A DNA stretch of 63,848 nucleotides, the filler included, from Pelomyxa schiedti (lineage: Eukaryota > Protista > Evosea): the NCBI GenBank assembly GCA_020536535.1. It is 7 parts of 7 records of this genome, joined end to end, with 100 filler letters (N's around TTAATTAATTAA, not from the genome) between each part and the next. Parts side by side here need not be neighbours in the genome. Positions count along the whole stretch, not along the records: positions 1 to 27,136 come from JAHLWZ010000584.1; 6 more parts are not named here. One strand, 5' to 3'. The notes under the pieces were generated by a model. The model saw nothing but the letters and a program-made list of their open reading frames with translations, had not been told where the DNA came from and made no database searches. The translations under genes were made by a program, and so were the position numbers. Positions 1-26,464 of this stretch are shown in pieces; the first letter of the stretch is position 1; the number at the start of each line of letters is the position of its first letter.

Positions 1-890
1 TGGCACGGAACATATGTTCCGCTTGCAGACAAACATACCGTCGGTGTGATTCATCCTATTGTAGGAACACCCACAACCGTAAGCATGTTCCCAAGCATGT
101 GTACAAAGAACTCGATCAGTTCTTGGCTGTGTTACTGTCATTGAGAAAGAAGAAAAATGAGGAATAAGCTGGTTTTTCTAGACAAGGCTATACCTAGCCA
201 TTTTACAAACTGGGGAGGCTCACAGGTCAGGGCACCCCCCACGCACCATCACCATCACCCCACCAAGTGTATGCTGTCTTATGTTGCTGTATTTCTTATT
301 TGCCGTGTGTGTAATGGAGTGCACAAGTGGCTCTGGGGCCTCCTCCTCCTCCTGCCCCGCACCCCACCATGTGCCACGCCAAAGCACCTGCCGCCGCAGC
401 CCCCTCGGCCTCGCCCTGGATCACGCTCCAACGGCTTCCGCTCACAACCCGCGATGTTGCTCGGCCGCCTCGCGACCAGCAGCAGCTTGCCCGTTCCGCT
501 GATACCCCAACTACGTTCAACAGCCCCCACCATTACGTTCAACTTCGGGTTGTAAGCCCGGGGACTGCCGCCACCAAGTCGGTTCAAGATCACCAGAAAG
601 TTGTAGACATCTGACATCAATTATCCCCAGACATCAGGGATCACGAGGTACCGTGTGTCCTACTAGTGATCCACCAACTGCGCTGGGCCTCGCAATTAAC
701 CTCAGGTCATTTGGAGTGTAACTTCCATCATCAACAATTCTGTATCGTAGCTTCGATCATCAAGATGACCCTTCCAGGGCCACACGTGTCACGTTTCCCC
801 AATACCCTTTAAAACGCCAAATTTTCCCACAACCAACAGAACTAACACACAGCGCAAGAACCACCTACAACAACACCCATTTCATTAAAC

Positions 891-2425: not shown

Positions 2426-4602
2426 TTATTCCTCATTTTTCTTCTTTCTCAATGACAGTAACACAGCCAAAAACTGATCGAGTTCTTTGTACACATGCTT
2501 GGGAACATGCTTACGGTTGTGGGTGTTCCTACAATAGGATGAATCACACCGACGGTATGTTTGTCTGCAAGCGGAACATATGTTCCGTGCCACCCAGAAG
2601 AATGCGGCATTCTTCCACTGCGGGGTGGGTGGGTTGATGAGTTGTGGAAATGAAGGAAAATAATTGGTGGAAGGAACCTTGGTGGAGTCACTGTCAAGGA
2701 GACGGGTACTGAGAATAAATTGATCCTGGATTTTTTTTTCCCATTTCATGCCGGAATTCAATAAGGCCCTCTGAGGAGAAAATGAGTGAAGAGCAAAAGA
2801 AAGAGACTGCAAAAATCGAAACAGAAACCTTCCACAGGGAGTTGGATCGGCCCATTTGATACCTCGACATTAATATTTATGTTTGCATGCAAGTGATTGA
2901 ACAAGGGGATGTACTCACCAAAATTTTGAAGTCTGTTGTATCCTCCCCAGTGATTTGATATCAAGCAGCTCCAGAACTCCGGTAATTTCAGCCTTGTACT
3001 GAATCATCATGGAGGTGATGGATTCGCTCACACTGGGTATGAATGGGATAAGAAAAAGGAAATGGAGTGGAAATTCGCACATAAATTCTGCCGCTGGGAC
3101 TAAATAATCTGACCACAGAGGCATAGAGGCACAGAGTTCAGAGCACGGAGATACAGGAAGAGAGGCCTTGTATACAGAGAGCGATTTTAGATGTTCTTCC
3201 CATGACCCTAGAAATGGTTAATAAATAGGCGCTGTATTCGGCAAAAGTACCATCGAGGTAACTTGCAAGTGAAAAAACTGGGTCATTGTTGCTCCAATCT
3301 CTGCAAAATTCAGGGGTGAGGATACCACCACAGCGTGCCATTTCTCGCACCATGTCTCGCTGGTCTGTTACAACCGCAAGGGTCATTGGTCTGGAACCTC
3401 GAGGGAATACTCTGGGAATCATAGTTCCAAATTGCTCACAATACCATTCCATACTCAGTGTACAGAAGACATTTGGGTCTGCACCAAGTCCAAGGAGTTT
3501 TATCACCATGTCAAGTGATTTCTTAGATACGGCAAAGTACAACAGTGTAAGAGTTCCACCGGGGAATGGAACCTGCTGGTTCACCACACCGGAGAGCTTT
3601 GGATGCTCCAGAAGAATAGTTCTATACCGGTCTGGTGCAGTGACCAGCAACTCCACCAATCCTTCACTGAAGACACTGCAGAGATATTCCAATATTGGTT
3701 CCCCAGAAGCTGATGTGACAGCGAGTTTGAGCGGCTTCCTCTCCTCCATTGCAGAAAGCACAAGCTGCTCCCACTTGGGATTGGCTATTGCCATAATTGT
3801 GTCCAACCGGGAACCAATAATTGCAGTTTCAAGCGGGGTCTTCCCGCATTTCGGCGGCCCCGTCATTACGTCGGTATAACAGTTGCTTCCGCCGTCGAGG
3901 CCTTGCAATAGGGAAATCTTCATTGATGTATCGCAAGACGAAAGTATCAAGTCGGCACACTTGTATTGGTTGTCTTGTGCACAAAGATGAAGCACATTGA
4001 AGTTGAAGAAGTGACCTGCGCCTCTACCTTTGTAACAGTGCATAGTATCAGCATGCCACTCCGTCAGCAAGCATTCCACAATATCAGTGTGTCCATTTCT
4101 GACTGCAATGATAAGTGGCGTGTAACCGCAGGAGGCTTCATCCACCAGCCACTTCATGGCATCGGCTTTCGTTGCCATCGTGTTGTAGGGTGGTCTGGAA
4201 GCCCATGTGTTGAGAATCACATTCATTTCGGCCAGGTGCCCCAGATGGGCGCAAACATGTATCACATTATCGTATCTGGGATGCATTAAGTAGGAGTACC
4301 AATGACAGTAAATAATATCATCAATACTATTATAGTTACTAGGCATTCAATTTCGTTAACAATGGCTTTTTGTACCTTTCCTTTGCAGAAACTTGGCGTT
4401 CTTGGCCAACAGGAACAGATTCAGCGGCGGCCCTCACTTTGGCAACGTCGCCCTTGACACATGCCCTCATGAGCCTGGCCCATAATGGCCCCTCTGATGC
4501 CTCGAGTGACTTGATGCTTTCGAGAGTGCGACGTTTGAACCTCTCGGCCTCCGACTCGGGGATCATAGGCTCACATTGGCTGGAGGAGAAATGTTGGCCC
4601 AT
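2426..4602 (-). CDS. Ankyrin-repeat / F-box-like / Cys-His tail protein, paralog 1 (multi-exon)
   Basis: MGQHFS start. Ankyrin motifs GYTPLIIAVRNGH, GKTPLETAI and LLGLGADPN. Spliced F-box-like EITGVLELLDIKSLGRIQQTSKFW|YQMGRSNSLWK. Tail WKNAAFFWVARNICSACRQTYRRCDSSYCRNTH. Confidence 0.8.
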
Positions 4603-4812
4603 TATTCTAGTTATTGTATCAGTAACAGTGCCAAACTATACTAATGTTGGCTGTGTGGTGAAGAGTGATGCTGCTTCTTTTTATGGAAGTTCGCTGAACT
4701 AACCAACAACCGTTGCCCTCCATTAATCGGTTCTAATCATGCAAGTTATTTCGAGTATTGGTGTGCATCACCAAACCCACCAAATTCCTTATTATTCAAA
4801 AAGAGAGAAACA

Positions 4813-5642
4813 ATGAAACCCATCACTGCACTTTCAGATTCGTCGAAACTAATGGCGTCGTCGATTGAGACGATGTGCATGACGATACCGGACGACGTAG
4901 GCAAGTTGCTAGTGTGCGAAAAGGTACAGTTGCACCAAGTGACGTGGGACCCCAAATTGGCAGCCTCGGGACTGGACTTTGATCGCCAGAACACAGTCGT
5001 GGAACACACGTCACCAGAATTAATCTACCGGACGGCACTGGCTAATGAGGGGTGGAATTCAGGCTGCCACTTTTGGTCCCTGCAAATTGTATGCTATGTG
5101 TTACCTTATACACCATGGTTTCTTTGTTCCCCTCTGCAGCCAAGCTTTTGGTTTAAAAAATTCCAAAACAGCTTAATTCTGGGAAGAACAATTGCATTAT
5201 GGTTGGAGTGTGTGATGAGGACTCAGTAGAGAGAAGAACGTTTTTGGACAACTACTTCCCAGGGATGACTGGTGAAGGCCTCTCATACTACGGAAACAAT
5301 GGGCACATTTACATGCCATCCGCCAAGCACCTGATGCATGGGAGGGGAATGAAAACCATGGTTTATGGCAACTGCAATTTTGGCCCAGCATTCCGCTCTG
5401 GGGCAGAAGTTGGAGTTCTGTTGAACCTGAATCCTTCCCAAGAGAGTTGTACATTCTACCTCAACGGCACAAAGGTGTAGATTCCTGCGAAACTTTCCTT
5501 CTTAGTTCTAATTCCTTGCATTTAGGTTGGTGCAGTTGGAAGTGAAGGTCTTCCTGCAGCTCGCTTATGCAAATATTTCCCATCCCTTGCCACATTTGAA
5601 CCTGGTCAGAGAGTCTTTTCTTTGCCACCAGATGAACCCTAA
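4813..5642 (+). CDS. Stand-alone SPRY/B30.2-like domain protein (3 exons)
   Basis: VTWDP...GWNSGCHFWSLQI|..MVGVCD..GLSYYGNNG..FRSGAEVGVLLNL..CTFYLNGTK|VG..YFPSL; GT-AG introns. Confidence 0.8.
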
Positions 5643-5865
5643 TTTTCTTGCGTCTTCAGCCATGTAGGTACCACACAGCTTCTTTTTAATTTCAAATCCA
5701 ACCATTCCACTAGGTGTTCGTAGGACCACAATTTCAAATAGTAAAGAAAAACTTCCGCATGTTCACATTTATTCATTTCCGTAATCTATAAGACAAAATC
5801 ACCACAGAGTTTGTAATAATTAATAGCTATTCAATAACAATAATTCCTCTTATTCCCTTCCTTCT

Positions 5866-8483
5866 TCATTCCTCATGGAGAGAGTTGTAGAGGGTGGAAA
5901 TTGATTGAAGTTGTGGTGAAACGGCCCTTGGCCGGTGCTGTGAAGCAACACAAACCACTTCTTCACAACTGCGGTAGTACTGGGCACACCGGCAACAGAA
6001 ACACCGTGACAGCCAGAAGAAGCAAACCCGCTTCCACTGTGAATGAAGTCAGTGAACAGTAAAATGGAATAATAACTTTTGGAAGCATTACCTTTGTGGT
6101 GGGTTCTTGGTCTAGGGTTGTAATCATCCGGTATAGTTTTGTCTTGGTTGCTTGATTCCATGTTGCGCTCGTGTTCAACAGTGCCCACTACAATTAATTT
6201 GTGTAAATTACTAATAAAAGTATCCAAATCACCTTCCACAACGAATTGGATCGTCCGGCATGGTACCTTAATGAAAAAGTAAAAATTTGAAAGTATTATG
6301 CAATGTAATAACCAAATTCTTGAGGTTTGTTGTATTCGGCCCAGTGCCTGTATATCTAAGAAGTCCAGGACTCCACTGATTTCGGTATTGTACCGCGCCA
6401 TCATCATGGTGATCGATTCATTAATCCTATTGAGCAAATTAGGGGAACTGTGTTGTCGCAATAGAGGGACCTTACGGAATTTTGGCAGTTACAAGCTTGT
6501 CATCTCCAAAAGATAGAGAAGCACAAAGTTCGGTGTGCTCTTCGGGAAATGGAAGAGTTTGGGTATAACTTATATTGGCCAGGACATGTTCTTGCCAGGA
6601 CCCTGTATCAATATCAGTGCCGCTTCAGAATGAACGTGCTACAAACCATCAAGGTAAGTCGCCACTGAAAAGTGGGGATCACCCCTGGACCAGTCCTGAC
6701 AAAATTCAGGAGGAAGAACACCTCCATGGTTTGACATTGCTTGCACTATTTGTTTCCGGTCTGTTATCAGTGCGATCACCATTGGCGTTAGAATTATTTT
6801 CGAAATGTTAATGCCACCCTGTCTCAGTTGTCCAATTGGGAGATCACGCCCATCTTCCCACTCTGGCCACTTTTCACACACTGTATTTGGGCTCGCTCCA
6901 AGCGATAGGAGCCTGTTCACCAGCTCCTTTTCACCTGAGACTGCCACCGCAAACAGTGGTGTTGTGTGTGGCTTACATTCAGTGAACCGGTTTAATACCG
7001 AAGGGAATTCCGGGTGCTGCAAAATTGTTTCTCTGTAGTTCCTCCTCCCATATACGAATGCATCCTCCAGCCCGTTGCTGAACACGCTACAGAGCCAGTG
7101 AAACACGTATTCTGGAGCATTTCTGTGCCTACGTATAGGTGCCTTGGCGTCCAGAGCTATTACCACACCCGGGCCCCACCTTGGGTGAGTCAGCATTTCT
7201 GCAAATCCCATGCTTCCAGAAGAAAGTGCCAGGTCTAGAACAGTCCCAACTCCCTCATTCCCCACAATCCCAACAAGTTCCGCCCTCTGGAGCTCATTGC
7301 ACCTGCTAAGAATCTCAGAAGCCCCTGCGGAATCATTCTTTGCTGCACATATATGTAAAACGGTGTACCCATTGTAGTCTTGGCTGTACTGACAGCATAC
7401 CATTATGTCAGCCTTCCACCGGTCCATAAGACATATAGCCACTTCCCATTGATCCTCTTTCGCGGCCATCATCAATCCAGTAAAACCTTGTTTCCTAGAA
7501 ACAGCATTCACCAGCCACTTCACTTCTTCCGCCTGCCGGTTACTTTTCTTCTTGTTTTCCTCTTCTCCAGTCTGGCTCTGCGATTCTCCACTTCCAGACT
7601 CTCTACTGGAACTGTAAGACTCAGTTACGAGTGCTACTTCATTTTTTTTTTACTAATTACTTTTTTTATTTATTGTGTAATAGGAATAACTTACGCTACG
7701 AATAAGTTCAAGCCAAACATACAACCCAAGAAAAAATAAACAACAAAGCAAACAACAAGGGACCCTATATATCTATCTATCNNNNNNNNNNNNNNNNNNN
7801 NNNNNNNNNNNNNNNNNNNNNNNNNNNNNNNNNNNNNNNNNNNNNNNNNNNNNNNNNNNNNNNNNNNNNNNNNNNNNNNNNTTTTTTTATTTATTGTGTA
7901 ATAGGAATAACTTACGCTACGAATAAGTTCAAGCCAAACATACAACCCAAGAAAAAATAAACAACAAAGCAAACAACAAGGGACCCTATATATCTATCTA
8001 TCACACACACCAATTAGTATCCCCATCATCGGCGACATCAGGATCGCCACTGGCGATGTTGCAGTCGGCCCATGTCTCCAGCACCGCGTCCAGCTCGGCC
8101 ACGTGCCCCAGCCCCGCGCACATGTGCACCACGCTCAGCCACTTCGCCCCCGAGTCCCACACCTGCTGCCACCGCCCCTTGCTCCCTCCCCCTCCCCCTC
8201 CTCCTCCCTCTGCCGCTGCCCCCCTGGCCTTGGCGACTGCGCGGGCGGCGGCGGCGGGGCCGGCGGCCCGGACCGCGGCACGGAGGATGGGCTTCTTCTT
8301 GTCCGGGGAGCGGGACAGGACCTTGGCGTACCTGGCCTTGAGCGCCTTGTATCGCTCCGGCCTGGGCGAACGTGTGGTCCCGGTCGGTGTTGTGGTTGCT
8401 GCTGCTGCTGGTGGTGGCGGCGAGGACGGCGACGGCGACCTTGCTGCTGTTATGGGTCTGGCCGACTCGACTGCGTTGCCCAT
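5866..8483 (-). CDS. Ankyrin-repeat / F-box-like / Cys-His tail protein, paralog 2 (multi-exon; gap lies in an intron)
   Basis: MGNAVES start; VVHMCAGLGH, GYTVLHICA, LLSLGASPN; EISGVLDFLDIQALGRIQQTSRIW|YHAGRSNSLWK; WKRVCFFWLSRCFCCRCAQYYRSCEEVVC..H. Confidence 0.8.
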
Positions 8484-8550
8484 TCAAATTCAGAGGTGAG
8501 GTTTTTTCTTGTAAAAAGTGATGAAACGAAAACGGGGGGCACTGGGTAGA

Positions 8551-9317
8551 CTAGTGACCACCCCGTGGGAAGTAAACAATTACATTATTTCGTGGAGGAG
8601 GAGGAGGAACTGCCAGGGATATAACCGAGGCACCAAGTTCATATAGTGATACAGATGGGAAGTATGTCCTTCCTGTGAGCACATCGGCTCCTGCTGCTGT
8701 TCCGACCTACGTTGATGGTTTAGGAATTGTAAGAAAAGGCCAAAGAACAGAGAAGATTCGGCGACTAGTGCATACCCTTGTTCCATTCAAGAAGAATGTG
8801 CAGGTTCTGTGTGTCATGTTGAGAAGAACTCCAACTTCTGATCCTGTTCCAAACACCGGTCCAAATCCTCCATAGCCTCCCAGTTTGTATGTGTAGCCAT
8901 TTGCACCGTAGTATGATACACCATCGGTCTTTAGCCCAGGGTAATGGCTGACCGGGAACATTCCACCAAATGAAGCATCGCACACTCCAATCATGATGTA
9001 CTTGCTTGGCCCTCCATCCAACTGTGTGTTGTGTTTTCGTCAACAAAGTCAAATATATATAATAATATTATATATATTTTTGCACGCACCACTTTCAAAG
9101 ACCAGTAATGGCTGCCGTCAAAGAATCCCTCATCTCCCAGAACTGTCTTGTGTGTCAACGTTCCGATGTTCTGTGTCACGAGTGTGTTTGCCTGGTCGAA
9201 GGCAATTCCTGGCGCAGCGCGGGCTGGGTCCCACGTGACGCAGTGATAATGGAGGTTGCCTACAGTGGCGAGGTCAGGAGGAATCCGCATGACTTCGCTT
9301 GGTTGTGCTGGCCGCAT
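8551..9317 (-). CDS. Stand-alone SPRY/B30.2-like domain protein, paralog of 4813-5642
   Basis: VTWDP..EGFFDGSHYWSLKV|..IMIGVCD..GVSYYGANG..FGTGSEVGVLLNM..CTFFLNGTR|VG..YFPSVSLY; same intron positions as the first copy; 5' end uncertain. Confidence 0.78.
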
Positions 9318-9553
9318 TCCTGTATTGGTGTCTTTGTTATGAGTGTATTTACAGCGGCTGTTATGTTTTCTTGAATCGTAATGAGTTGGAAAGGAAAAGG
9401 AACGAAAAGTACGTAAAGTAGTCAAGTTGGTACTGTTGTGCACGTCTCTTTAGCGTCTTTTTTTTTCCTTCTTGTTGATTTGGGCGAAGTGTTCGGCCGA
9501 AAAAAAAAAGCACCAGTGCCGTAGCAAAAACGACACATCAACCCACATTTCAA

Positions 9554-9757
9554 TTAGGATTTGTCAGAGTTTGAGGGGAGTGATGAAGATGGTTTGTTGT
9601 TGTTGCCAGCAACGAAGGTGGCTGGTCGCTCCCATTGGCTGGTCCTTGTCTGTATATTGACGTAGTAGACACGACCCGACGAGGGGTCGAGGCGCTCCTG
9701 CCAATAGTCGTCAGCCTTGGTTTGCTTATTAGACATGTCCCTCTTGTATGTGCGCAT
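9554..9757 (-). CDS. WW-domain ORF (small protein, or first exon of the SPRY gene)
   Basis: [27 protein letters not shown] matches the WW consensus W..D..GR.YY.N..T..SQWE.P. Confidence 0.8.
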
Positions 9758-9923
9758 ATTAGATATATTACATTGTGGTGGAACTAACTACATCACCTGT
9801 ATCCAACTACTACAACGAACAATTTGTTCTCGGAAATGATGAAACGAGACAGTTGGGTGCCTTTGTAGCCCCCAGTTGTTTACTTTTGTTTGTGTGGGCA
9901 TTTAAGTGATGGAATCTTTCGTT

Positions 9924-11915
9924 TCATGGGAGGGTAGTGAAGGTGACAGTGATTGTGCGGAGTTCAGGGGGATTGCACCTTGGTTGGTGGCATTTCTTTG
10001 TGTTGTGATGGTGCAACTTGCACTTAGTGCCCTCACGGTTCTGGTAAAAAGTGTGGCACCTTGTGCAGAAGCACTTGGAGAGCCAGAAGAATCCAACGTT
10101 TTTCCACTGCAATTGCCATTAGAGAAAGGCTTGCATAGTGATAGAGACATGCCTTGGTTGTTGTGTCTTGCTCAAGGATTTCAACACCAAGAAGAAGCTT
10201 TTTTTGAACTTTTCTGTGCCATGACACACTTGTATTAAGCAAAGCCAACTGCCAGTGGTGAACAGACATTAAAATGAAAATGAAGTACACACCTTCCAAG
10301 TGGAATTTGACTGTGCAGCCCCGTACCTGCGCAATTTTAGATAATAAATACACCAGTTTTGAAGCAAAGACTACCAAAATCTTGATGTCTGTTGGAGTCT
10401 ACCAAGAGATCTGATGTCAAGAAGCTCCAAGACTCTGGACATTTCATTGTTAAACTGTACCATAAAAGAGGTGATTGACAGTCCAGTCCTTTTTCCCATT
10501 AGTTGGCAATGAATGGATGGCCACGAGTAAAACATACACAATCTGAGAAGGATGTAACGTGTGTGGAAATGACAGTGGTTTGTACAACTCCCAATGTTCA
10601 CTCTGAGTTGGGAGTGAATCCTCGTAGTCTTCCTTTGCCTTAGAATGCTCTTCCCAGGAGCCTTTTTGAAGGTCAGTTCAGACTGATCAGTTTTTCAGAA
10701 CGGAAACCAACCATCAAGGAAAGTGCCGAGCGAGAACATGGAATCACCTTTCCCCCAAATATGACAAAAGTGGGAAGGTAATTCACCTCCACACTGTGAC
10801 ATCTCTTGCGCCAATCTTCTCTGATTTGTCCCCACTGCAAGAACAAGTGGGGTTATAACACTCTTGGGGAGAGCCAGTGAATGCCGCAGTTCGTGTGCTG
10901 CACGGCACAGTGTGTTTGGGTCCGCACCAAGAGAGAGGAGCTTCAGTGCCAGCCTTTTCTTTCTTTTCAATACAGTAACAAACAGGCATGTTGTATGGGG
11001 CTTTTTTTCAGTAAGAACATTGATGTGCTGTGGGAACTCTTTGTGGTCCAAGATGAAATCACGGTTGTGCTTGGAACCATGAACAAAAGCGTCCTGCAGC
11101 CCTTTGCTGAACCCCACCTCGCACAGGCAACTGAATACCTCTGGCATTTTTTTGCAGTGCCTTCTGAGTGGGGCCCTCTCATCCATTGCCTTGAGGACAG
11201 CTGGCCCCCACTTTGGATTCGTGATCATCCTCACAAAGTCCAAGTAATCACTCTCCAGAGCCACATCAAGAGCTGTGCCAACACCCTCATCAGCCTGGAA
11301 CCCAGCCAATTCTGCTCTCTGTGAGTCACTCCTGCAGGCTGCCAATATCACCTCAGCACAGTCAATCCTCCTCATCTCAGCACACAGGTGCAGAACAGTA
11401 AATCCATTATATCTCCCTGCTTGCTCTCCTGTGCAAAAATACGTCACATCAGCATTGCAACTGCTCACAAGGTATTTCAAAATTCCACAGTGTCCTCCCA
11501 TAACAGCCTCCATTACAGCATTGAATCCGTTCTTATTTTTTCCTGCAGAACTCACCAGCCACCTCACACTCTCAATCTTATTCTTAGGAGCAACAGGAGA
11601 ACTTGCAACTGCAGAATAATTGTAAGCGGTTCTGATCGGCTCACTCGAATTAGTGATAGAACCAGCACTTTGCCAGCAACTCAGAATTGCCTCTACTCCC
11701 TCCATTTGGCCATTTGCAGCGCACCACTGCACCACAGTCAGGTAGTAATCGGTGCCCATTTGAAAAGAGAATTGGCCCATGTGCAGCGCCCCATTGTGGG
11801 ATCCTCTTAGCACGCTCTCCTCGATGAACTCTGCTGTCGGCATCCGGGCGCCCTGTGCGATCAGCAGTTGGTCTATCCTCCGTTGCCTCTCAGCATTTGA
11901 CGGCACTGTGCCCAT
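9924..11915 (-). CDS. Ankyrin-repeat / F-box-like / Cys-His tail protein, paralog 3
   Basis: MGTVPS start; GFNAVMEAVMGGH, GFTVLHLCA, LLSLGADPN; EMSRVLELLDIRSLGRLQQTSRFW|YGAAQSNSTWK; WKNVGFFWLSKCFCTRCHTFY..C..HHH. Confidence 0.82.
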
Positions 11916-12190: not shown

Positions 12191-13609
12191 TCAGAGAACG
12201 TGACGAAGTACTTCCTTGATGAGGCCTTGGAAGCTGGCACCCCTCTTTTTGGCTTCTATAAGAACATCCTCTTCAGTCAGCACTTCATTGCAAATTCCGG
12301 CAGCCATGTTGCAGACACAGGCAATGCCAAGAACCTCCATTCCGCAATGCCGGGCAGCAATTGCCTAATGCAGGAAAATTCTATGAGAACAAAGTACATA
12401 GGGGAAGTGGGAACAGGAAGGAAGCCAACCTCAGTTACTGTGCTCATTCCAACTGTGTCTGCGCCTAGTATGCGGGCCATTCTTATCTCCGCGGGAGTTT
12501 CATATGTGGGGCCGAGCATGCACATGTAAACTCCGGACTTGAGTACATCTTGTAGGCCTAGTGCCGCTGCAGCCGTTCTAACCACTTGTTGCAACCGCGG
12601 TGTGTAGGTGGTCCCCATGTCAGGGAATCTTGGGCCATACTCGTTGATGTTTGGTCCAACTGGTTGTGGTGTTAGCAAGGTGTACGTAAGGAAAGGATTC
12701 TTACCTAAGGGGTTTTTCCCTGTCATATTGATATGATCCGATAGCATCATAAGGTCGCCTCTCTTGTAGCTTGTGTTAACAGCACCGCATGCGTTGGTAA
12801 CAATCAGGACTCTAACTCCTAGATGCTTCATAACCCGGGTCTAAAAAAGGGTAAGGTAATCGGACTTAATTAAATTTGAGTTTTACAAATATAATTTGTC
12901 TTATTATTGTAACTAATTCAGGCAAATTCACACCGGCATTGCTACAGTCGATGGTTCATATCCCTCATACAAGTGAACGCGTCCTTGCATACATACGACC
13001 CTGACACCACATAGTGTGCCAAGTACCAACTTTCCAGCATGGCCGGGTGCTGTAGAAACAGGGAACCCAGGAATTGACGAGTAAGGAATGATTCCACCAG
13101 NNNNNNNNNNNNNNNNNNNNNNNNNNNNNNNNNNNNNNNNNNNNNNNNNNNNNNNNNNNNNNNNNNNNNNNNNNNNNNNNNNNNNNNNNNNNNNNNNNNN
13201 CGTCCTTGCATACATACGACCCTGACACCACATAGTGTGCCAAGTACCAACTTTCCAGCATGGCCGGGTGCTGTAGAAACAGGGAACCCAGGAATTGACG
13301 AGTAAGGAATGATTCCACCAGTGGACGTGTCAACTTCCAGTGCCAAATCCCCAAGGCCTGAACCCAAGATAATTCCCACCTTTCAATGTTAAAATGGGGA
13401 AAAAAACCCAAAAGTATAAGATAAATCACTACATTTTGAACGCGACTAGCACCAAAACCGTTTGGGTTTAAAAGGGGGGGTGCGATTATTTTATAAATAA
13501 TTAAAACGAAACGACGCACGGGGTAGGGTTCGGTGAAGTGGATGGTGGCCTTGATGTGTTCCGCAGCGCGGATGATATCAGCAGCACTCCTCTGTATCAC
13601 TTCTTGCAT
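12191..13609 (-). CDS. PNP: Purine nucleoside phosphorylase (trimeric family), multi-exon
   Basis: GIILGSGLG, IPGFPVSTAPGHAGKL, MQGRVHLYEGY, VTNACG, DHIN, GPRFPDM, GPTYETPAE, GADTVGMST. Confidence 0.95.
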
Positions 13610-13833
13610 TCTCAACTTGCTTCTTCTTGTTGTGCTTTTTTGATTTTTTGTTTGTTTTCGCCCGTTCAAAAAGAACCGGAAGTTTTTTCTGCTAAGAAAG
13701 CTGGAACCGAGAGGTTGCTGGTCCTGGAATCTTAGCGTGAGAAGAATCGATCCCATTGAGGACACTCTTGTTGGGTACCAGACCAGACAGGTTTGTTTCC
13801 GATGAGGGTCATTTGATCAAAAACTTTGGTGTG

Positions 13834-14856: not shown

Positions 14857-17342
14857 TCAGTCAGAAAACCCATAAAAAGGGTCGTCAGTGTCAAAGCTGG
14901 GGTCAGACGCTGTTGGCGGTTGCTGAGTGAACACATCGTCAAATATACCCTCAAGGTAGCGGTTGTCGGCAGAGCCGGGTGGTTGCTGGGGAACATATAA
15001 AGGGGTTACTGCCTTGTGCAGAACATCAGGCCACGAAATCCCATGAAAGTACTGTAAGCAAAATAAGAGGAATGAATGAGTATTTGATTCTATTAGTATA
15101 TACTGGGTGTTGCTTCATCAACTGTGGGTCACTGAGTCTCTTTGCTGGGTTTTTGTTTAACAGCTGTCAATAGAAAGGTGATTTTTAGTGAAATAGTGAG
15201 TGTATAAGGTCTACCTTGCCAATGAGATCGGTCTCTTCGGCTTCGAAATGCGCTGGGAATACTGGTGAGTCATGCATAACACGTTGGTACATGTCTTGGA
15301 TCGATTCTGAATAAAATGGTGGCTGAGATAATGAGTTAAAGCCAACATGACCGGGGTGGAATGTTACCAGTCCTGCCCGTAGTTCAAACAACAACACCCC
15401 TGGTAACAGTGAACTGAAAAGAAAAAACTCCAAAGTGTTTGTTACCAAATGCCCACCAATCAACCGATTGTCCTGAGGGAGAAGTAAGTTTCAGACAATG
15501 TCAATCAAATTGATACCATAGGGAACTCTTTCGAGAATCTCGGGTGCTGTTTTCGGAATTAGTAATAACAACAAGTTTAAGACTACCCAAATAGTCCGGT
15601 GTACCACAAAGGGAATCAGTTCTTAATTCGGTTTTGGGTTTGGTTGCTTGCTCGTCGTAACATAACTTCGCTTCACCTGGGTGATGGTGATTGAGATGGA
15701 CAGAAGCCCCTCATCGTACCAAAATCAACAACAACAATGTGACCTTGAGTTTTGTCATAATCGATAAACAAACTCACAGAAACAACCTTCTTTTGTCAGA
15801 AGTAAGTTTTCTGGTTTTATACCTCTGTAGTGGTGTGAGATTCTTAATAAGATTTTAGTTTTTTTACCTGTAAATAATCGACAATGAGTGAAGATGTTCC
15901 AAAGCCAGTAGCGTCTCAGCAGCCCATAATTTTACAACTGAAGCACTGAACTTCTTTTCTCTTGCCAGGTGATAGAAAAGCTCTCCCCCTGTGACGTAAT
16001 CGAGAATGAAGTAGTTCTGGCAGATTAACGTGAATTTTATCATGTAACTGAGGTTTGTGTACGAATTTAGAGGTCCTGTAACAGTGGTGGAGTTTCACCA
16101 AAAAAGGGTGGTCCACAAGTTCGTGAACAACTTGTTCCTGTGATCTATTAATCTCAAATGAAGCCCTCTTCATAGCAAAAAACTTTTTTGATGGAATGTG
16201 TTCCATCTGAGAAACCTAGAACAATCAGGAAGTTGAAGTCAGGTAATGAGGTAGTGAGTATACCTCACCGAAGCTGCCTTTCCCAATTACTCTCAAAAAG
16301 TTGAAGTCAGATAACAAAACAGGAACCTCCTATGTGCGCGGTAAAATTGAGCCCCAAAGTGGAAGGAAGCAACTTGAAAAAGAAGCCTCGCAATGGACTG
16401 AATGATATCTGGGGGGAGTATCTTGAGCACAGAGTCAAGTGAGACTCTATGATGGTAGAAGCCAGCCAAGAATGTCAGGATTGAGCACTTCATCCTCTCT
16501 TTTCCTTCCTGAGGTTTTTATTCTATGAATCTCAGCGGAATGAAAAACCTTGGGAAAATATTTGAAAAGAGCACAGTTTATTGTCGAAATCCAGTTATCT
16601 CGAGCAATATCACTTTCAGCAGCTAAGTAAGAACACAACCCAGCAGATTTTATGCAGAAAATATGTTGGATGTCCCTGGGGTGACCAACATTACATAAAA
16701 AAAAAAGGTTCATTACGGTTGAAGTGAAAAACCTTGAGACATGAGCATCCGCGGCAGAAGCAAGTGTGTGGGGATCAGTGAGAGATATTCTCGTAAATGG
16801 TTTCTTTTCCCGTTCCTCTGGCGTATCGTTCTGTTCAAAACGCAGGTCACACACTGTCGTTGAGTGGCACATCAACATTAAAAATCCAATCAGCAAGCAA
16901 AGACGCGCGCGCACGCGCGCACACGGACACGCACCGCATAAACCACGAGTGACAGTGTCTCCACAACACCCCCCGGCTTCGTGACTGACATCACACCGTA
17001 TCCACGCGTCCACCCCCCGCCACAACCACAACCACAACCACAACGACCACTGATACCGCCGCCGCTACCTTGGACTTCAACAGCATCAGCATGGCGTGAC
17101 TGTTGCAGTGGCGTGGGTGGTACCATCAGCCAGCCCTCCGCGCCTGGTTCGTGTCTCTTGCGGCACACGCACCATCGCCAGCCTCCGCTGCCACCGCCGC
17201 CCATGGTCGCCATGGTCACAGGGAGTAACTCCCCGCCCCATGCTGCTGCTGCCGCTGTTGTTGTTGTTGGCGGTGCTGATGACGAAGCAGCCGGGGTGGC
17301 GCTGCTACCGTCACAAGACTGCGACGATGATGGCTGCGTCAT
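14857..17342 (-). CDS. PH domain + AGC-family (Akt/SGK-like) kinase, possibly a pseudokinase
   Basis: PH (EGWL..W; RDNWISTI), GKGSFGEV, FAMK, HPFLVKLH, IIYR|GIKPEN, VVDFG, CGTPDY, PPFYSE; C-terminal hydrophobic motif FYGFS. Start codon uncertain. Confidence 0.85.
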
Positions 17343-17374
17343 TGTTCGGGCACCGGCACTTTTTTTTCTTAGGC

Positions 17375-20290
17375 ATGAACATTGGGGAGCGGGGAGGAGG
17401 GGGCAGTCGTTGCTGCGTGTGCCGTTGTTTCCTCTTCCCTCCTTCTGGTGGGGCTGTGGCAGGGTTGGTGGAGCCTATGTGCGGGCACCCGGTGTGCGGC
17501 CTGTGTGGGGACGCCATAGTGACCTTTTCGCGTGACATCCCCGCCGCCTCTTCGTCCTCCTCTTCCTTTTCGTCCTCGTCCACGTCCTCGACCTCGTCCT
17601 CATTCGCCGCTGTGCCACCAACGCCTACTACCCCGTCGCGGGATTTTGCAACTACCAACAACAGCGGTGGTTGTGGTGGCGATGGGGATGGCGCGTGCGA
17701 GTGTGTATTGTCATCAGTTCCGGCACCGCCGCCGCCAAGCGAGCCAGCGGTTGCTGCTGACATCACGATGTGGTGCTCGGCGTGTGGGTGTACAACGGGA
17801 GCTACGCTGAGGCCGGCGCCGGATCGAACTCGCAAAACTGACCCGCCTTCTAGCGGTGCCGGTGAGAATCTCGCTATGGCAGTGTCACGACCGCAGGCGG
17901 CTGCGGTCGTGGTGAAGAAAGAAAGGGGGGATGGGTCATCGTCATCATCACCAGGCGATGCAAGCTTAATCCCAACACAAACGAACCCAAAGAGGAGGAG
18001 GGTGGCTGTGGCTGTGTGGTGCAGTATGTGCTGTGCGATGGGGGTTGCGGAAGTTCCGGCGAAGTACTGGTGCCAAGACTGCACGAGGACATCAGGCGGT
18101 GGTGCGTCGCTGTTCTTCTGTGATGCCTGTTGGAGAAAGGCTCACTGGACACCTTTGTTGATGTCCCATGCAAAGTTGGATCCTGTCTCTGCTATGGTTC
18201 CTTCTCCTGTCTCCAACAGTATCCATCACCGCGATAATAATAAATTCTATATATATAATAAATATATATAATATTAAGTATAATTAAAAACAATAATAAC
18301 GACACTGCAGTGAAGGCGTGCGGAATTCACCACCTCCCTCTCGATGTATTCTGTGAAACTGATGGGGACTTCATTTGCGCCATCTGCTCATTTTCTTCTC
18401 ACAAGGTCGTTTTCACCTCTTACTTGGAAAATTGCAAACTTTCATTTTTTTGTTTTTTTTTTGGAAACAAAGGGGCACAGTGTCGGAACTGTAGAAGATT
18501 TTTATATGAAAAGGAAACCAAGTGCGCAAACATTTTTGGACCAACTCTCACAAATGGAGGTGACTCTTGATACTTTGGTTGCGGCAATCAAATTGGAGAG
18601 TGTCAGCATGAACCAGGTCAGTTCCCACTTTTCTTTCCTCCTTAATCACAAAAAACTTTCCAGGTTCACAGCCAGTTTGAGGGGGATGTCCGCAAAGAAT
18701 TCAGTGTTCTGATTTCAAGATTGCAAGAAAGACAAGAGGAATTAATTTCCACATCCCAGTCAATTTCATGTTCCAAAGGTTGTTTTGCACTTTCGTGCTT
18801 GGAACTCATCCTCGCATACAGCTTGTGCCCTGTCAAGGCAACTTGAGTGTGTTTCTGCCGGTCTCTCACACATTGCGGAGTATAAATCCAAGTGTGAGTC
18901 AGTACTGAGAAGTGATGATCCCTACCAAATCATTGAATTGTATGACTCGATCCCTGGAATCCTCAGAGTGCTTCCTTCAAACACTGGCCAGAGCAGCCAA
19001 CTTGAATGTGAATGTGAACCAAACCACCTCTCACCATGCGCAAAAACCGGAATGTTGCGCTGCAGCACCGGTGATACTGAAATGTTCAAGTCGAAAATTC
19101 CGCAGATGTGTAACATTTCCTATGGTGTGCATTGCTGACAAATTCATTTGAATTACACTTACCTTAATAACAGTGCCGGTCATCACCGCCATCACAGAAG
19201 AAGCGATAGCAAGCACAACCGGAGGAGCTGTTGTGAAATTGAGTGGATGCTGGCCCACAACAGCAATCAACAAGGACATTCAAGTTCTGCTTGGGGAATC
19301 AGTCTGCCCGAACGTGAGTGTCAAAACTCCTGGCTCAGTCTTGACCTTCACGGTGCCAGAGGGTGTTGGATGTGATCTCCCTGTGTATCTCCGTGTCTTT
19401 GGTGTCACTGCTGACAGACCAAATGACACCAGGTTCTCATACGAAGGTGTGTTCATCCAGTTTTATTTTATTGTTGATCTGACTACAACCAGGACCAAAG
19501 ATTCAGGGTATGTCCAAAGTTGCACACCCGGGTACCCCTGTCCGAATTGAAGGAACTGGGTTTGGCACATTGCCAAGTGCAATCAGTATTTCCATCTTTT
19601 GTATGTACCGACCGTTCAACACTGATTTTACTTACGTGTAATCCAGCCCACGGTGTTACATGCAGCAATATTGCAGTAGTACACCCACACACAAGTATCA
19701 CATGCACAGTACAAGGGCAGGATAGGAAATTACTTTCTGCACCACTGACCCTCACAGTTGGTAGACAACATACAACATCCACTGTACACTTTGGAATGGA
19801 GTGGGACACACAGAACTGTGGGAACCTCCTTGTTATATCTGGTGACAGGAAAACTGTGTGCAAGCCAGACAAGGCCGGCTTTGGCTTCCTCCAGTCCGCA
19901 GTCACAGCCCTCGCGCCGCTCATTGGTGACCAAGTGTTTGAATGGAGGTTATCAATATCTGGGCTGCAGAACCCCTATGGATCACAGCTGGTGTTCTTTG
20001 GAGTGATAGCCAAGCCATTTGATCAGAACCAATCGCAGGGGTATTGCCAAATGTATGGCTGGTCAACACTAGGAGAGAAAATGCCCACTGGCGGCCTTGC
20101 CATCATTGACCACAAGGCAGTGCTCAAGGCAGAGAAGGTCACACTGAGGTATGTGCCATCCACACTCACTCTCACTGCAACATGGCACCTGCACGAAAAC
20201 AAAACAACGGTGTTGACCAAAGTGCCAAGGGGGTTGTTCCCTGTTGTCATTGCCGCAGACGGAGGCAACACCATCAAGATAAAACTGTAA
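17375..20290 (+). CDS. TRIM-like protein 1: split RING, B-box1, B-box2, coiled coil, IPT/TIG, SPRY-like
   Basis: CCVC..CGHPVCGLC..WCSAC; CSMC..AKYWCQDC..FCDACWRKAH..H; CGIHHLPLDVFCETDGDFICAIC..H; RLQERQEEL; PVITAI..GGAVVKLSG..VLTFTVPEGVG; EWD..FEWRLSI..VFFGV..YGWS..LFPVV. Confidence 0.82.
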
Positions 20291-20323: not shown

Positions 20324-23300
20324 ATGCATCATCAGGGGAGTGGTAACCACGCCAGACGCACGCCGCCATCATCGCCATCATCGCCATCATCGCCATCATC
20401 GCCATCATCGCCATCATCGCCATCATCGCCAACAACAACAACCAAGCTGCTCCGCTGCTGCGTGTGCCGAGTTGCCTTCCCTCTGACGATTCCAGGCAGC
20501 GACTCTGCGCGTGGTGGTGGTGGTGATGATGCACCACCCTCGGGGGCGTACGACCACCAGGCCCAGCAGCAGCAGCAGCTGTCGTGCGGGCACGCGGTGT
20601 GCGGGGAGTGCCGGGGCTGCGCCGCCACGTTCTCCCGCGACATCCCTGCCGCCTGCTCCTCCTCCTCCTCTTCCTCCTCCTCCGCATTGCCGCGGCCACC
20701 ACCACCATCACCATCACCGGTTGTGGCTTCCTCGTCGTCGGCAGCGGCGGCGTCGGTTCCCCCTCCGGCAGCATCAGCAGTTTGTAGTGGCAGTGGTGAG
20801 GGGATAGTGTTGGTGTGGTGCGGAGTGTGTGGTTGCACCCGCGAATTAAGCTCCGTCCTGCCATCACCACCAAAACAGGAAAAAGAGGAACCGGTTGAAA
20901 AACAAACGCAGAAGCAGCAGCGGGAGGAGGAGGAGGAGGAGGCTGTGCGTCATGATGGTGGCAGCGGTGGCGGTGGTGTGATGGTGGTGAAGCGAGAGGA
21001 GAAGGAGGGGGATGTGCTAGAATCGGATGAGAACCCAACACCAACAAACCCAAAGAGGAGGCGAATGAGGATGAATGCGGCAGCAGATGTGAGTGCGACG
21101 TGTGTGATGTGCCGGTCGGCTGGGAATACTGGGGTTCCGGCCAAGTTCAGGTGTGATGAGTGCACAAGGGCGTCGGGTGGTGACACGCCAATGTTGTTCT
21201 GTGATTTGTGTTGGTCCAAGGCCCACTGGGCCACCTGGTTGATGTCTCATGCCAAGTCCGATCCTCTCTGTTTGAATCCAGCTCAAGCAACAGGCATTTT
21301 ATTGTAGAATGTTTATAAATTTATAAAATCACCTGTACCTTTATACTTATTTGCCCTTATGTTTAATATGTAGACTAATACACCATTCTAATTTTTTTCA
21401 AAATTAGAATTTTTTTTTTTAACACTAAATGGTTGTTTAACTGCCTATTTCAAAAACAGACACGAGGATGTGTGAAACTCACTGCCAGCCTCTAGATATT
21501 TACTGTGAAACAGATGGTGCTTTCATCTGCTCAAAATGCTCTCTTTCCCTTCATACCGGACACGACACTGCAGCGGTGGACACCCTGTATCGCGAAAAGA
21601 AACCCACCGCAAAGGAGTTTATGCTGCAGCTTTCACAAGTGGAGCTTGATTTGAGTTCTCTGGCTGGATGCATCAAGTCTGAAAATAACAATATCCAACA
21701 GGTGCTTCTCAATTGTAACGTTGAAGGGAATTAACACCAAAAACACACAGTTTCACTCCACGTTTGAGGATAAGATTCGCAAAGAATTCAGTGTTCTGAT
21801 TTCAAGACTGCAAGAAAGACAAGAGGAATTAATCTCCACATCCCAGTCAATTTCCCACTCCAAGGGTGTGTGGACCCCCAGATTCCCCCTCCCCACTCTT
21901 TATGATACTTATACTTAACACAGCTTGTGCGTTGTCAAAGCAGCTTGAAAGTGTTTCTGCCGGGCTCTCACGAATTGAGAAGTACAAATACAAGTTTGAG
22001 CCAATCCTGAAAGCTGGAGATCCATTCAAAGTCATTGAGCTGTGTGAATCTGTTCCCGGAATCCTGAAGGTAAATTCACCTTCACTGTTCAACAAAAACC
22101 GCCGACGCACAAACAGCAGCTTGAAGTATGCAAACCGGCACATCTGTCACCATGCACCACATTAAGTTGTTGCACAGATGAGACAGAACTCTTCAAGTCA
22201 ATGATACCACAGATGTGCTCCATCTCTCCGGGTGTGTGTTTTAAATTCCATTGTGCCTTCCACTCAAAATCAAATCAAATCAAATAAACAGGACCAGTAA
22301 TCAACAACGTCAAGGAGGAAACAATTACAGCCAGTGCAGACACTGGTGACCGAGTAGTTACACTGAGTGGGTGCTGGCCAACAGCCGCAACAAACAAGGA
22401 CATTCAAGTTTTGATTGGGGATTCAGTGTGCCAAAATGTGAACATCACAACGCCTGGCTCCGTTTTGAAGTTCACAGTTTCGGAGGGGATTGGCTCAGAT
22501 CTCCCTGTGTCTCTCAGTGTCTTTGGTGTCACTGCTGACAGACCAAATGACACCAGGTTCTCATTCAAAGGTGTGTCCTGCTGCATAAATCCCTGTTTTG
22601 ATTATTTGGTAACAATTCAAAGGACCACAGATTAAACATATACTTGGAGTTACACAGCTTGGAGGGAGGATTACAATTGGTGGAACTGGGTTTGGCACTT
22701 CACCAAGTGCAATCACTGTTGCAATAGATGGCATGTGTGCCCATGCAACCCACCCAAATTTTGACTGGAGTTCTAATGGAACAGCCAGATGTTAATTGCA
22801 GTGCAGTTGAAGTGAGCTGCCCACACACTCAAATAAAATGTACTGTTCCAGAACAAACCAAAAGGGAAGCCGTGTTGACTCTCACTGTTGGTGGCCAGAA
22901 AGCCAGGCCCACAACCATCTCTTTTGACTGGGGTTTGTGATTCACACTTTAAGTCATTTTAACACTCCAAATAGGTGGAGGAATGAAATGGGATAAAACC
23001 AGCCTTGGCCACAACTTGACTCTTATTAGTAGTTACTCCATCAGGAGTGAGGGGACCAAAGCAATGACGAAGCAAACCACAGGGATGGCAACCACACCGC
23101 TAAGTGGTGACTTTGTGTACTGCTGGGGCCTCACCATTGACGACCTTGCAAGAGATGATGACGACGGAGATGACACCAGCAATCCAAAGAATCAGGCACC
23201 CTGGACCAAGCGGGTTCTGTATGGTATTGCAGCCAAGCCGTTCCCCCAGGACAGTGTCACGCCCTCTATGTACCTGTGTGGGTGGTCCACAAAGGCAGAA

Positions 23301-23513
23301 AAGTACCACTTGCCCAAGGCAATACCCGCATTCACAGCAAGAGGGGAGAGGGAGGTGGTGTCTTTCCGGTATGATGCACGTGCCCAATTACTCACAGTAA
23401 CATGGCCACGCCACAACAACACCACAGCGGTGGTGGGCAACGTCCCAAGGGGATTGTATCCTGTTGTGTCCCTCACAGCTACCAACACTTCTGCAAGTTT
23501 TGAGAATCATTAG
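20324..23513 (+). CDS. TRIM-like protein 2 (tandem paralog)
   Basis: CCVC..CGHAVCGEC..WCGVC; CVMC..AKFRCDEC..FCDLCWSKAH; CETHCQPLDIYCETDGAFICSKC; coiled coil; two TIG-like units; KWD..YCWGLTI..GWST..LYPVVSL. Confidence 0.82.
20366..20430 (+). repeat. 9-bp coding tandem repeat (GCCATCATC)x~7
   Basis: Directly visible; encodes (PSS)n. Confidence 0.9.
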
Positions 23514-25346: not shown

Positions 25347-26364
25347 ATGAGCAGTGCCTCGTCATCATCAACAGCAGCAACCACCACGACCACGTACCTG
25401 AGCACTGGGGACCTCGCGGCCAACTTGGGGCGTGGGTCGTGGGTGGTGCTGGACGTGAGGTGGATCCACGGCGACCCCCTGAAAGGCCGTGCCGACTTCC
25501 TGGAATCACACATCGAGGGAGCAGTGTTCGTGCACCTCGTCGAGGACGCGACTGGTGAGGTCGTACCCGGTGTCACTGGAAGGAACCCCCTCCCATCACT
25601 CGAAAAGGCCAACAAGGTTTGTCCATCACCAAAACTTTATTTATGTCTGTCTGGAATTCATGATAAATGACATTTTATGTATCACCTCATAAATTCCTAA
25701 CTTATTATGTATTACTTGTATGTATTACTTGTATGTATCACTTCATAAATTCCTAACTTCCAACAACAAGGTTTTTTCCAGGGCTGGAATAAACCCGGGA
25801 TCGACCGTGGTTGTTTATGACAGCATGGGAGGGGCATTTGCAGGCAGGGTGTGGTGGATTCTCAAGTGGCTTCAGCACGATGGCCCAGTTTACCTTCTCG
25901 AGGGGGGATTCAAGAAATGGAGCCGGGAAGGCCTCCCAACATCATCAGGCGATGAGCCACCAAAGGCCCTCGGCACGTTCGTGGGCAGGCCATGTGCCGA
26001 AATGTGTGTCGGGGCAGAGGAAGTGATGGCAGCGCTGAAGGAACCAGAATCCTGGAAGCTCATCGACACCCGCCCAGCAGAGAGGTTCACAGGGCAGAGC
26101 GAGCCGGTGGACCCAGTTGCCGGACACATCCCTGGGTTCATCAACGTGCCGTTCCAGCAGAACATCAACACAACCACAGGGATGCCACTCACACGCGAGG
26201 AGCTTCGGGCCAAGTACGAGGCTGTGTTTGGGGGAGTGCCAGTGGACAGGGTGATAATGTCATGTTCAGCTGGGATTGTGGTTGGGCTGTGTGTTCTTTC
26301 TGTTGTGCACTCTGGCCTTGGGATGCCCAAGATGTACCCTGGTTCGTGGAGTGATTGGATCACT
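25347..26364 (+). CDS. Double-domain sulfurtransferase (SseA/MPST/TST family); 3' end runs into a gap
   Basis: Intron 25617-25770. GI..GSTVVVYD, AGRVWWIL, LEGGFKKW, LIDTRPAERFTG.SEP.D..AGHIPG, active-site SCSAGIV, YPGSWSDW. Confidence 0.92.
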
Positions 26365-26464
26365 NNNNNNNNNNNNNNNNNNNNNNNNNNNNNNNNNNNN
26401 NNNNNNNNNNNNNNNNNNNNNNNNNNNNNNNNNNNNNNNNNNNNNNNNNNNNNNNNNNNNNNNN

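Follow-up and report, generated by a model that had tools for sequence, protein, structure and literature searches.

Pelomyxa schiedti is an anaerobic archamoeba living with prokaryotic endosymbionts (PMC8887013, PMC10579272). Here, we describe a gene family of this species whose products combine N-terminal ankyrin repeats with an F-box-like motif near the C-terminus and a conserved Cys/His tail, starting from three members on contig C584. This contig (27,136 bases) forms positions 1 to 27,136 of the window and belongs to an assembly of 52 Mb in 5,337 contigs. The three paralogs, here called A (4602..2426), B (8483..5866) and C (11915..9924), all lie on the minus strand, and the deposited record describes the products of A and B as "hypothetical protein" only. 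The large exon of each gene is an ankyrin-repeat open reading frame (ORF), matching Pfam Ank_2 with E = 8e-17, 6e-09 and 1e-18 in A, B and C, respectively, and pairwise identity among these exons is 34-36%. Further downstream, every gene carries an F-box-like exon, a mini exon of 11 codons and a Cys/His tail exon in matching phases. A preliminary description of this DNA, made from the sequence alone, had proposed three same-strand paralogs, and both the ankyrin ORFs and the shared 3' exons bear this out. The borders of the 3' exons are GT-AG with a single GC-AG exception, the frames of all three genes are intact with exon lengths that total whole codons, and each gene has 5-6 spliceosomal introns at conserved positions. 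The proteins of A and B were searched and modelled in their deposited spliced form, while C was examined exon by exon.

Gene A, for which the model was built by homology, is identical to the deposited 603-amino-acid protein P0002. Its Met-Gly start and N-terminal region are placed on a separate 5' exon (4376..4602, as for all following exons on the minus strand) that opens with the first ATG after a stop; the junction, inferred from donor and acceptor sites, agrees with P0002, and the exon is identical to the start of that protein. The ankyrin exon (3251..4275) ends in a phase-1 donor after a conserved LDG and likewise matches P0002. It is followed by a linker exon of about 42 amino acids (3081..3207), which has RNA-supported homologues in B and C and is included in P0002, and by the F-box exon (2919..3032), which encodes helices 1-2 and the start of helix 3 and matches Pfam F-box-like at 26.3 bits over P0002 residues 479-512. 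The mini exon (2829..2862), containing the end of the F-box with its LW motif, was recognised by its GT-AG borders and phase and by a W-to-LW spacing of 8 residues. A 31-amino-acid exon (2678..2770), present in P0002 and helical in the AlphaFold2 (AF2) model, then leads to the tail exon (2426..2617), which contains WK..F.W, CxxC, the His motif and the stop codon.

The product of gene B is deposited as P0009 (KAH3760782.1, "hypothetical protein Pelo_7390", 659 codons). Exon 1 (8011..8483) encodes the Met-Gly start and a low-complexity N-terminus, identical to the start of P0009, and the ankyrin exon (6647..7611) matches both Pfam Ank and P0009 and is covered by RNA over 6662-7055, 7206-7342 and 7401-7603. 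The linker exon of about 42 amino acids (6476..6602; RNA joints 6602/6647 and 6426/6476), the F-box exon (6313..6426; RNA joints, Pfam F-box-like 18.7 bits on P0009, hhalign 92%), the mini exon (6233..6266; RNA joints 6266/6313 and 6187/6233), a 32-amino-acid helical exon (6092..6187; RNA joints 6187/6233 and 6036/6092, both RNA runs) and the tail exon with the stop (5866..6036; RNA joint at 6036) complete the gene. In gene C, the Met-Gly start and the ankyrin repeats share one exon (10712..11915; Ank_2 as above), covered piecewise by RNA over 10711-11434. Here the linker exon of about 41 amino acids (10538..10661; RNA joints 10661/10712 in two runs and 10488/10538) is followed by the F-box exon (10375..10488; RNA joints, Pfam F-box-like E = 0.019 for the exon alone), the mini exon (10293..10326; RNA joints), a 32-amino-acid helical exon (10153..10248; RNA joints 10248/10293 and 10106/10153), then a GC-AG intron (plus-strand ends CT..GC) and the tail exon with the stop (9924..10106; RNA joint at 10106).

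The RNA evidence comprises spliced contigs from two single-cell transcriptome runs of one study. For B, these yield the chain ankyrin to 6647, 6602..6476, 6426..6313, 6266..6233, 6187..6092 and 6036..stop, and for C the chain ankyrin to 10712, 10661..10538, 10488..10375, 10326..10293, 10248..10153 and 10106..stop. On the gene strand all joints are GT..AG with one GC..AG exception, a type that makes up 1.59% of P. schiedti introns (PMC8887013). Genes B and C are thus spliced and expressed, and in their transcripts the ankyrin exon is connected to the F-box and tail exons, as the preliminary description had assumed. The splicing of A and B additionally agrees with the deposited models P0002 and P0009. 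Of the exon chain drawn up earlier, the order ankyrin, F-box and tail stands, and two exons had been overlooked, one of about 42 amino acids before the F-box and one of 31-32 amino acids before the tail. The latter follows the mini exon and precedes the tail, so that in the protein the two WK motifs are separated.

An assembly gap (7782..7881) falls within intron 1 of gene B, between the end of exon 1 at 8011 and the beginning of exon 2 at 7611. The sequences flanking it, 7661-7781 and 7882-8002, are exact duplicates (121/121 identical), two sets of DNA contigs from the same sample (X1, X2) join 7641 to 7882 with no extra sequence, and the exon lengths with borders 8011/7611 total exactly the 659 codons of P0009. 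Thus, the gap is an unmerged assembly overlap inside an intron, and no coding sequence is lost. That the gap might conceal coding sequence was considered and rejected on account of the exact duplicate flanks inside the intron. The junction of exons 1 and 2 agrees with P0009, and the sole RNA contig at this place stops at 7603 with four unplaced letters.

Three small discrepancies were observed within B and C. The DNA contigs bridging the gap also lack 19 bases (7642-7660) of a T-rich stretch beside the duplicated block, which points to either an indel or a collapsed low-complexity stretch of the intron. In one RNA contig (run X4), a 58-nucleotide GT..AG segment is spliced out of the B ankyrin exon (7343-7400, minus strand), which shifts the frame and leads to a stop about 35 codons on; the deposited model retains the segment, and the splice looks like an unproductive one of the exitron type. 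At 10472, in the C F-box exon, both DNA contig sets lack 4 letters and the RNA contig matches the sequence of the window, which points to either a C allele with a frameshift or a discrepancy between assemblies.

The family extends far beyond this contig. A profile of the F-box exon finds 41 places in the 52-Mb genome and a profile of the tail finds 44, with conserved spacing, so that P. schiedti has at least 40 members. The order of F-box exon, mini exon, 32-amino-acid exon and tail exon is retained together with the introns in all loci fetched, and an intron-free paralog with contiguous F-box and tail was sought among the copies without success, every copy retaining introns. Copies are often in tandem, with four units on contig C386, three on C1183 and, on C584, a fourth member next to A, B and C, whose tail exon (3..146, plus strand; tail profile E = 2.3e-21) is cut by the left end of the contig. 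On C386 (153.8-160 kb, loci L030 and L054), the four ankyrin/F-box/tail units are deposited as a single 2,068-amino-acid model, P0001. The frame of the tail exon at L030 is open for 386 codons into the ankyrin-like sequence of the next unit, and at least one pair of these units may be truly fused.

Outside this genome, no relatives emerged. When 1.84 billion representative proteins were searched exhaustively by HMMER, the F-box-exon profile gave only 15 strong clusters, and the 13 that were looked up were all P. schiedti "hypothetical protein Pelo_*" entries or came from C584. Pattern scans with both the F-box and tail profiles found no relative in 2.9 million viral contigs or in 241 million metagenome records, and a protein word-index search with the C ankyrin exon returned no match at 1e-05, by a tool that, when queried with P0010 residues 569-678, returns nothing beyond the query and misses known paralogs, which makes this second blank uninformative. 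Neither ankyrin nor F-box nor ubiquitin is mentioned in the two P. schiedti papers. Judged from these sequence searches, the family has so far been seen only in Pelomyxa schiedti.

Conservation is unevenly distributed along the proteins. N-termini have a mean pairwise identity of 0.23 and ankyrin exons one of 0.33, whereas F-box exons, the best conserved part, reach 0.67. The ratio of nonsynonymous to synonymous substitution rates (dN/dS) is below 1 in 13/13 paralog pairs, with values of 0.40-0.74 for ankyrin exons and of 0.05-0.51 for the exons at the C-terminal end. The composition of the family genes resembles that of neighbouring genes. The introns at conserved positions, the spliced transcripts and the presence of at least 40 paralogs within the nuclear assembly support the proposal that the genes are host-encoded.

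The F-box assignment was assessed by scanning ten deposited family proteins with Pfam F-box-like (PF12937), the curated cut-off of which is 24.3 bits. Three proteins exceeded this value, namely P0002 (26.3 bits), P0007 (25.0 bits) and P0013 (27.7 bits), and the alignments run from profile positions 11-15 to 35-46 of a profile of length 47. When F-box exons were taken in isolation, 26/29 matched PF12937 at E <= 1. Comparison by hhalign of 29 family exons with 22 canonical F-boxes of the same genome gave a probability of 92.3% (E = 5.4e-07, 22 columns), and the W-to-LW spacing of 8 residues is the same in the family and in this genome's canonical F-box consensus. The preliminary description had recognised an F-box-like motif lacking the usual Leu-Pro start; the motif indeed matches the F-box by both comparisons, and at the place of Leu-Pro the family has Tyr or Phe followed by a polar residue. 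By the Pfam criterion, then, this is an F-box family. A sequence search of the PDB with the F-box-exon profile yielded only chance-level P450 rows (E about 2). The genome contains at least 148 other F-box matches above the Pfam cut-off (405 candidates, of which 150 were scored), and its F-box repertoire is therefore large even without the family described here.

The machinery of Skp1-cullin-F-box (SCF) ubiquitin ligases is likewise encoded, with 5 Skp1 loci and several cullin loci. Since introns interrupt all of the Pelomyxa Skp1 loci, the complete Skp1 of Physarum polycephalum (94% identical over 37 aligned residues, 31% of the query) was modelled by ESMFold2 in complex with a zinc ion and P0002 residues 455-603, together with three controls. 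The complex scored 0.70 (runs 0.72, 0.70 and 0.70), compared with 0.02 for the best control, on a scale whose mark was reached in calibration by 51/78 solved complexes and 2/108 mismatched pairs. The runs share >= 88% of contacts, with a partner predicted local distance difference test (pLDDT) value >= 56. The interface is formed by Skp1 residues 82-163, mostly 103-163, and P0002 residues 472-499 plus 510, 514 and 546, and is thus predicted to use the canonical surface made up of the C-terminal helices of Skp1. An SCF adaptor role had been suggested for these proteins; it gains support in silico from the Pfam match of A, the hhalign comparison, the complex model and the Skp1 and cullin genes, with binding to Skp1 standing as a prediction.

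Downstream of the F-box, the tail was compared across 31 copies (P0002 numbering). W541, K542, F546, W548, C554 and C557 are present in 31/31 and H577 in 29/31, Y561 is found in 28/31 with Phe in the remaining three, and R562 in 26/31. The WK, F.W and CxxC elements of the motif described earlier are thereby confirmed. The well-conserved His sits further downstream than given there, and the third and fourth Cys are variable, with C564 in 19/31 and C569 in 22/31 copies; copies without a later Cys have an extra His. In the AF2 model of P0002 497-603 (31-row alignment, pLDDT 77), the chain makes a short helical turn where the F-box ends, continues through three longer helices and a Cys/His loop without helical structure, and closes with one more helix. 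Binding of zinc by the tail is plausible from the CxxC-plus-His pattern.

A Met-Gly start is found in A, B and C, as first noted in the preliminary description, and also in five further complete deposited models (P0003, P0007, P0010, P0011 and P0015) and two copies on C290; the two deposited models without it are cut off or start late. The N-termini seen are those of copies with a deposited model or with a start no more than 1.5 kb away from the F-box exon. Positions 3 and 6 were compared by eye with the PROSITE PS00008 pattern for myristoylation, which calls for small or uncharged residues at these two positions. A and C, with Ser at position 6, again in line with the earlier observation, and five others, with Ser or Gly there, fit the pattern; B, with Glu, is the only exception among the N-termini seen. 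The remaining N-terminus is only 23% identical, suggesting that Gly2 is selectively kept. An N-myristoyltransferase gene is present at one locus on contig C972 (PF01233, above cut-off). With Met-Gly in every complete model and this enzyme encoded in the genome, an N-terminal myristate anchor on the family proteins is plausible.

Taken together, we consider it fairly probable that the family consists of SCF-type cullin-RING substrate receptors with a reversed domain order, Skp1 binding being predicted from models and both zinc and myristate proposed from motifs. The fast-evolving N-terminal ankyrin solenoid would bind the target, and the conserved three-helix F-box near the C-terminus would dock on the C-terminal helices of Skp1 and thereby recruit Cul1-Rbx1. 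The approximately 100 residues that follow, comprising the three helices, the Cys/His loop and the last helix, would cap the F-box and are probably held by one zinc ion. Lastly, the Met-Gly start is probably myristoylated, in which case the receptor would act at a membrane. On this reading, the family is a new lineage-specific variant of SCF receptors, set apart by reversed domain order, by a Cys/His cap that is conserved but unclassified, and probably by a lipid anchor at the N-terminus, and the interpretation given in the preliminary description is partly supported.

Several observations weigh against this interpretation. Seven of the ten proteins fall below the PF12937 cut-off, P0012 and P0011 by little and P0009 (gene B) at the 18.7 bits given above, and profile positions 1-10, where Leu-Pro usually lies, are unaligned in all ten. 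The F-box alone is modelled by AF2 with low pLDDT, the model of P0002 430-603 reaches 59, and the assessment of the gene C product rests on its separate exons, with the E-value stated above. The complex score measures likeness to solved Skp1/F-box complexes, which the model may have memorised, the Skp1 in question is that of Physarum and not of Pelomyxa, and the zinc ion lies outside the calibration. With regard to the tail, the fourth zinc ligand is not conserved, Pfam gives no recurrent family and no recurrent zinc-finger family, and the tail profile has no match among PDB sequences. Fold searches with AF2 497-603 gave at best E = 3.2 in the PDB by Foldseek, Z = 4.9 by VIA-align and TM <= 0.44 in the ESM Atlas, and this absence of a fold match to a predicted model is no evidence of a new fold. 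At the N-terminus, Glu6 of B fits the myristoylation pattern poorly.

Some of these points would equally be expected if the F-box were degenerate and no longer bound Skp1, the proteins serving instead as ankyrin scaffolds whose C-terminal end is used for oligomerisation or for docking to another partner or a membrane. The missing Leu-Pro, the ten initial profile positions that are never matched, the majority of members under the Pfam cut-off and the poor AF2 model of the isolated F-box all fit such a loss, and the invariant W541, K542, F546, W548 and CxxC imply constraint beyond what an ordinary F-box needs. We nevertheless regard this explanation as unlikely, since the complex model recovers a canonical Skp1 interface with a score far above its controls, hhalign relates the exons to canonical F-boxes of the same genome at 92%, and no other part of the protein is as conserved as the exon facing Skp1. 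Moreover, poxviral F-boxes that are missing a whole helix still bind Skp1 (PMC9414399). Much less credible is the idea that the array consists largely of decaying duplicates or gene-model artefacts without function. Although some copies have in-frame stops, many sit on contigs of short length, four units are fused in one deposited model, one B RNA contig uses the frameshifting 58-nucleotide intron and DNA contigs show the 4-nucleotide deletion in the C F-box exon, dN/dS is below 1 in every pair compared, A, B and C have intact frames of whole codons, transcripts of B and C are correctly spliced and the motifs are invariant across 29-31 copies, making general decay extremely improbable.

The origin of the family could alternatively lie in a captured viral or bacterial ankyrin/F-box effector, either PRANC-like or taken from a giant virus, which acquired introns and multiplied afterwards. 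In function, the proteins would then resemble the effectors of pathogens more than an old lineage of cellular receptors. Ankyrin repeats followed by a C-terminal F-box are typical of poxviruses, Orientia and Nasonia (PMC9414399), and the HMMER search of representative proteins found no relative in other eukaryotes. The nearest language-model look-alikes of the C-terminus are unnamed Nucleocytoviricota clusters at 0.87-0.88, below the 0.9 mark and thus a lead only. Against capture stand the lack of relatives of either profile in the viral contigs, the 5-6 introns at conserved positions and the composition shared with neighbouring genes, and in sequence the F-box exon is closest to the canonical F-boxes of the same genome. 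The PRANC profile is also unmatched, both in the ten family proteins at E <= 0.1 and in the genome at E <= 0.01, a search that was likewise without match in control genomes. We therefore hold capture of this kind to be very unlikely.

A more far-reaching version of the receptor hypothesis would have myristoyl-anchored SCF receptors with a zinc cap positioned at vacuole or symbiont membranes, their ankyrin repeats diversifying to recognise proteins of intracellular prokaryotes, prey or viruses; the family would then be a host-side counterpart of the ankyrin/F-box effectors of poxviruses and Orientia. In this complete form we find it quite doubtful. The one ground for placing the proteins at phagosome or symbiont membranes, as the preliminary description had suggested they might be, is that Pelomyxa houses prokaryotic endosymbionts. 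In more general terms, host control of intracellular microbes is a role for which receptors so numerous, fast-evolving and possibly membrane-bound could reasonably be considered, as Pelomyxa lives with obligate prokaryotic endosymbionts (PMC10579272).

In comparison with known systems, the family shares with canonical F-box proteins (PF12937/PF00646) a three-helix F-box, the W-to-LW spacing and the predicted interface with the C-terminal helices of Skp1, and with the F-box families of nematodes and plants a large, lineage-specific and tandem organisation. Unlike canonical F-box proteins, it places the F-box near the C-terminus and the recognition domain N-terminally, has no Leu-Pro, begins with Met-Gly and carries a conserved Cys/His extension of approximately 100 amino acids after the F-box. 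Legionella AnkB, a lipid-anchored F-box/ankyrin protein, resembles the functional picture proposed for the family. In AnkB, the F-box is N-terminal and the protein is farnesylated at a C-terminal CaaX. The family, likened to AnkB by description, has instead a C-terminal F-box and no CaaX, and its proposed lipid is an N-terminal myristate. The ASB proteins, Cul5 receptors made up of ankyrin repeats and a SOCS box, offer a further parallel with their N-terminal ankyrin repeats and short C-terminal cullin-adaptor motif; a SOCS box was rejected, as no SOCS-box Pfam match was found at E <= 0.1 and the family motif aligns to the F-box. Emi1/FBXO5 similarly has a Cys/His-rich segment downstream of its F-box. 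Its zinc-binding region is an IBR-type C6HC domain, whereas the family tail has only two Cys and one His well conserved and belongs to no recurrent zinc-finger family.

In its domain order, the family parallels ankyrin/F-box proteins, which according to a review of the field occur almost only in poxviruses and are "extremely rare in eukaryotes", Nasonia being the only eukaryote in which they have been identified (PMC9414399). Language-model neighbours of the whole protein include fungal clusters named as F-box proteins with ankyrin repeats as well as a poxvirus ankyrin family, so that the combination of ankyrin and F-box is not unique in itself. The ankyrin-PRANC proteins (PF09372) of poxviruses, Orientia and Nasonia share with the family the ankyrin repeats followed by a C-terminal atypical F-box and the presumed role of SCF adaptor. 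PRANC F-boxes are truncated to two helices and located at the very C-terminus (PMC9414399), whereas the family F-box has three helices followed by about 90-110 residues and is encoded by intron-rich host genes rather than effectors. Of the parallel to ankyrin-PRANC effectors drawn in the preliminary description, the domain order consequently remains, and the unmatched profile, the three helices and the roughly 100 residues after the F-box depart from it; membership in PRANC is rejected on the grounds of the missing profile match and the different anatomy.

At least 40 intron-rich genes with a complete F-box, with expression seen for B and C, are carried by a free-living amoeba, indicating that proteins with ankyrin repeats ahead of an F-box can originate and multiply as a family of cellular genes. 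The family further offers a system outside pathogens for studying how a C-terminal F-box without Leu-Pro docks on Skp1, what a conserved Cys/His cap adds to an F-box and whether myristate can tether SCF receptors. It also provides an annotation for dozens of entries so far named "hypothetical protein Pelo_*".

Other features of contig C584 were recorded alongside the family. Between paralogs B and C, a gene on the minus strand (8707-9757) encodes a clear WW domain (E = 6.5e-14) with a weak match to SPRY behind it, and none of the RNA contigs covers it. On the opposite strand, an ORF pair at 4813-5480 (plus strand) resembles the SPRY-like sequence of this gene. The plus strand further carries a pair of paralogous Cys-rich ORFs, behind each of which lies a beta-rich ORF, the latter two also being paralogs (17096-18271, 20324-21307, 19520-20290 and 22983-23513). 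These ORFs include one weak B-box-like match (E = 0.009) and may form a second tandem family with a TRIM-like architecture. The 5' part of a purine nucleoside phosphorylase gene, together with an upstream ORF, is present twice (12942-13765 and 25890-26675), with both copies adjoining N gaps (13101-13200 and 26365-26464), and represents either a segmental duplication or an unmerged assembly overlap. Finally, an inverted duplicate at 891-1538 encodes the same Ser/Thr-rich N-terminal peptide on opposite strands on either side of the gap 1201-1300.

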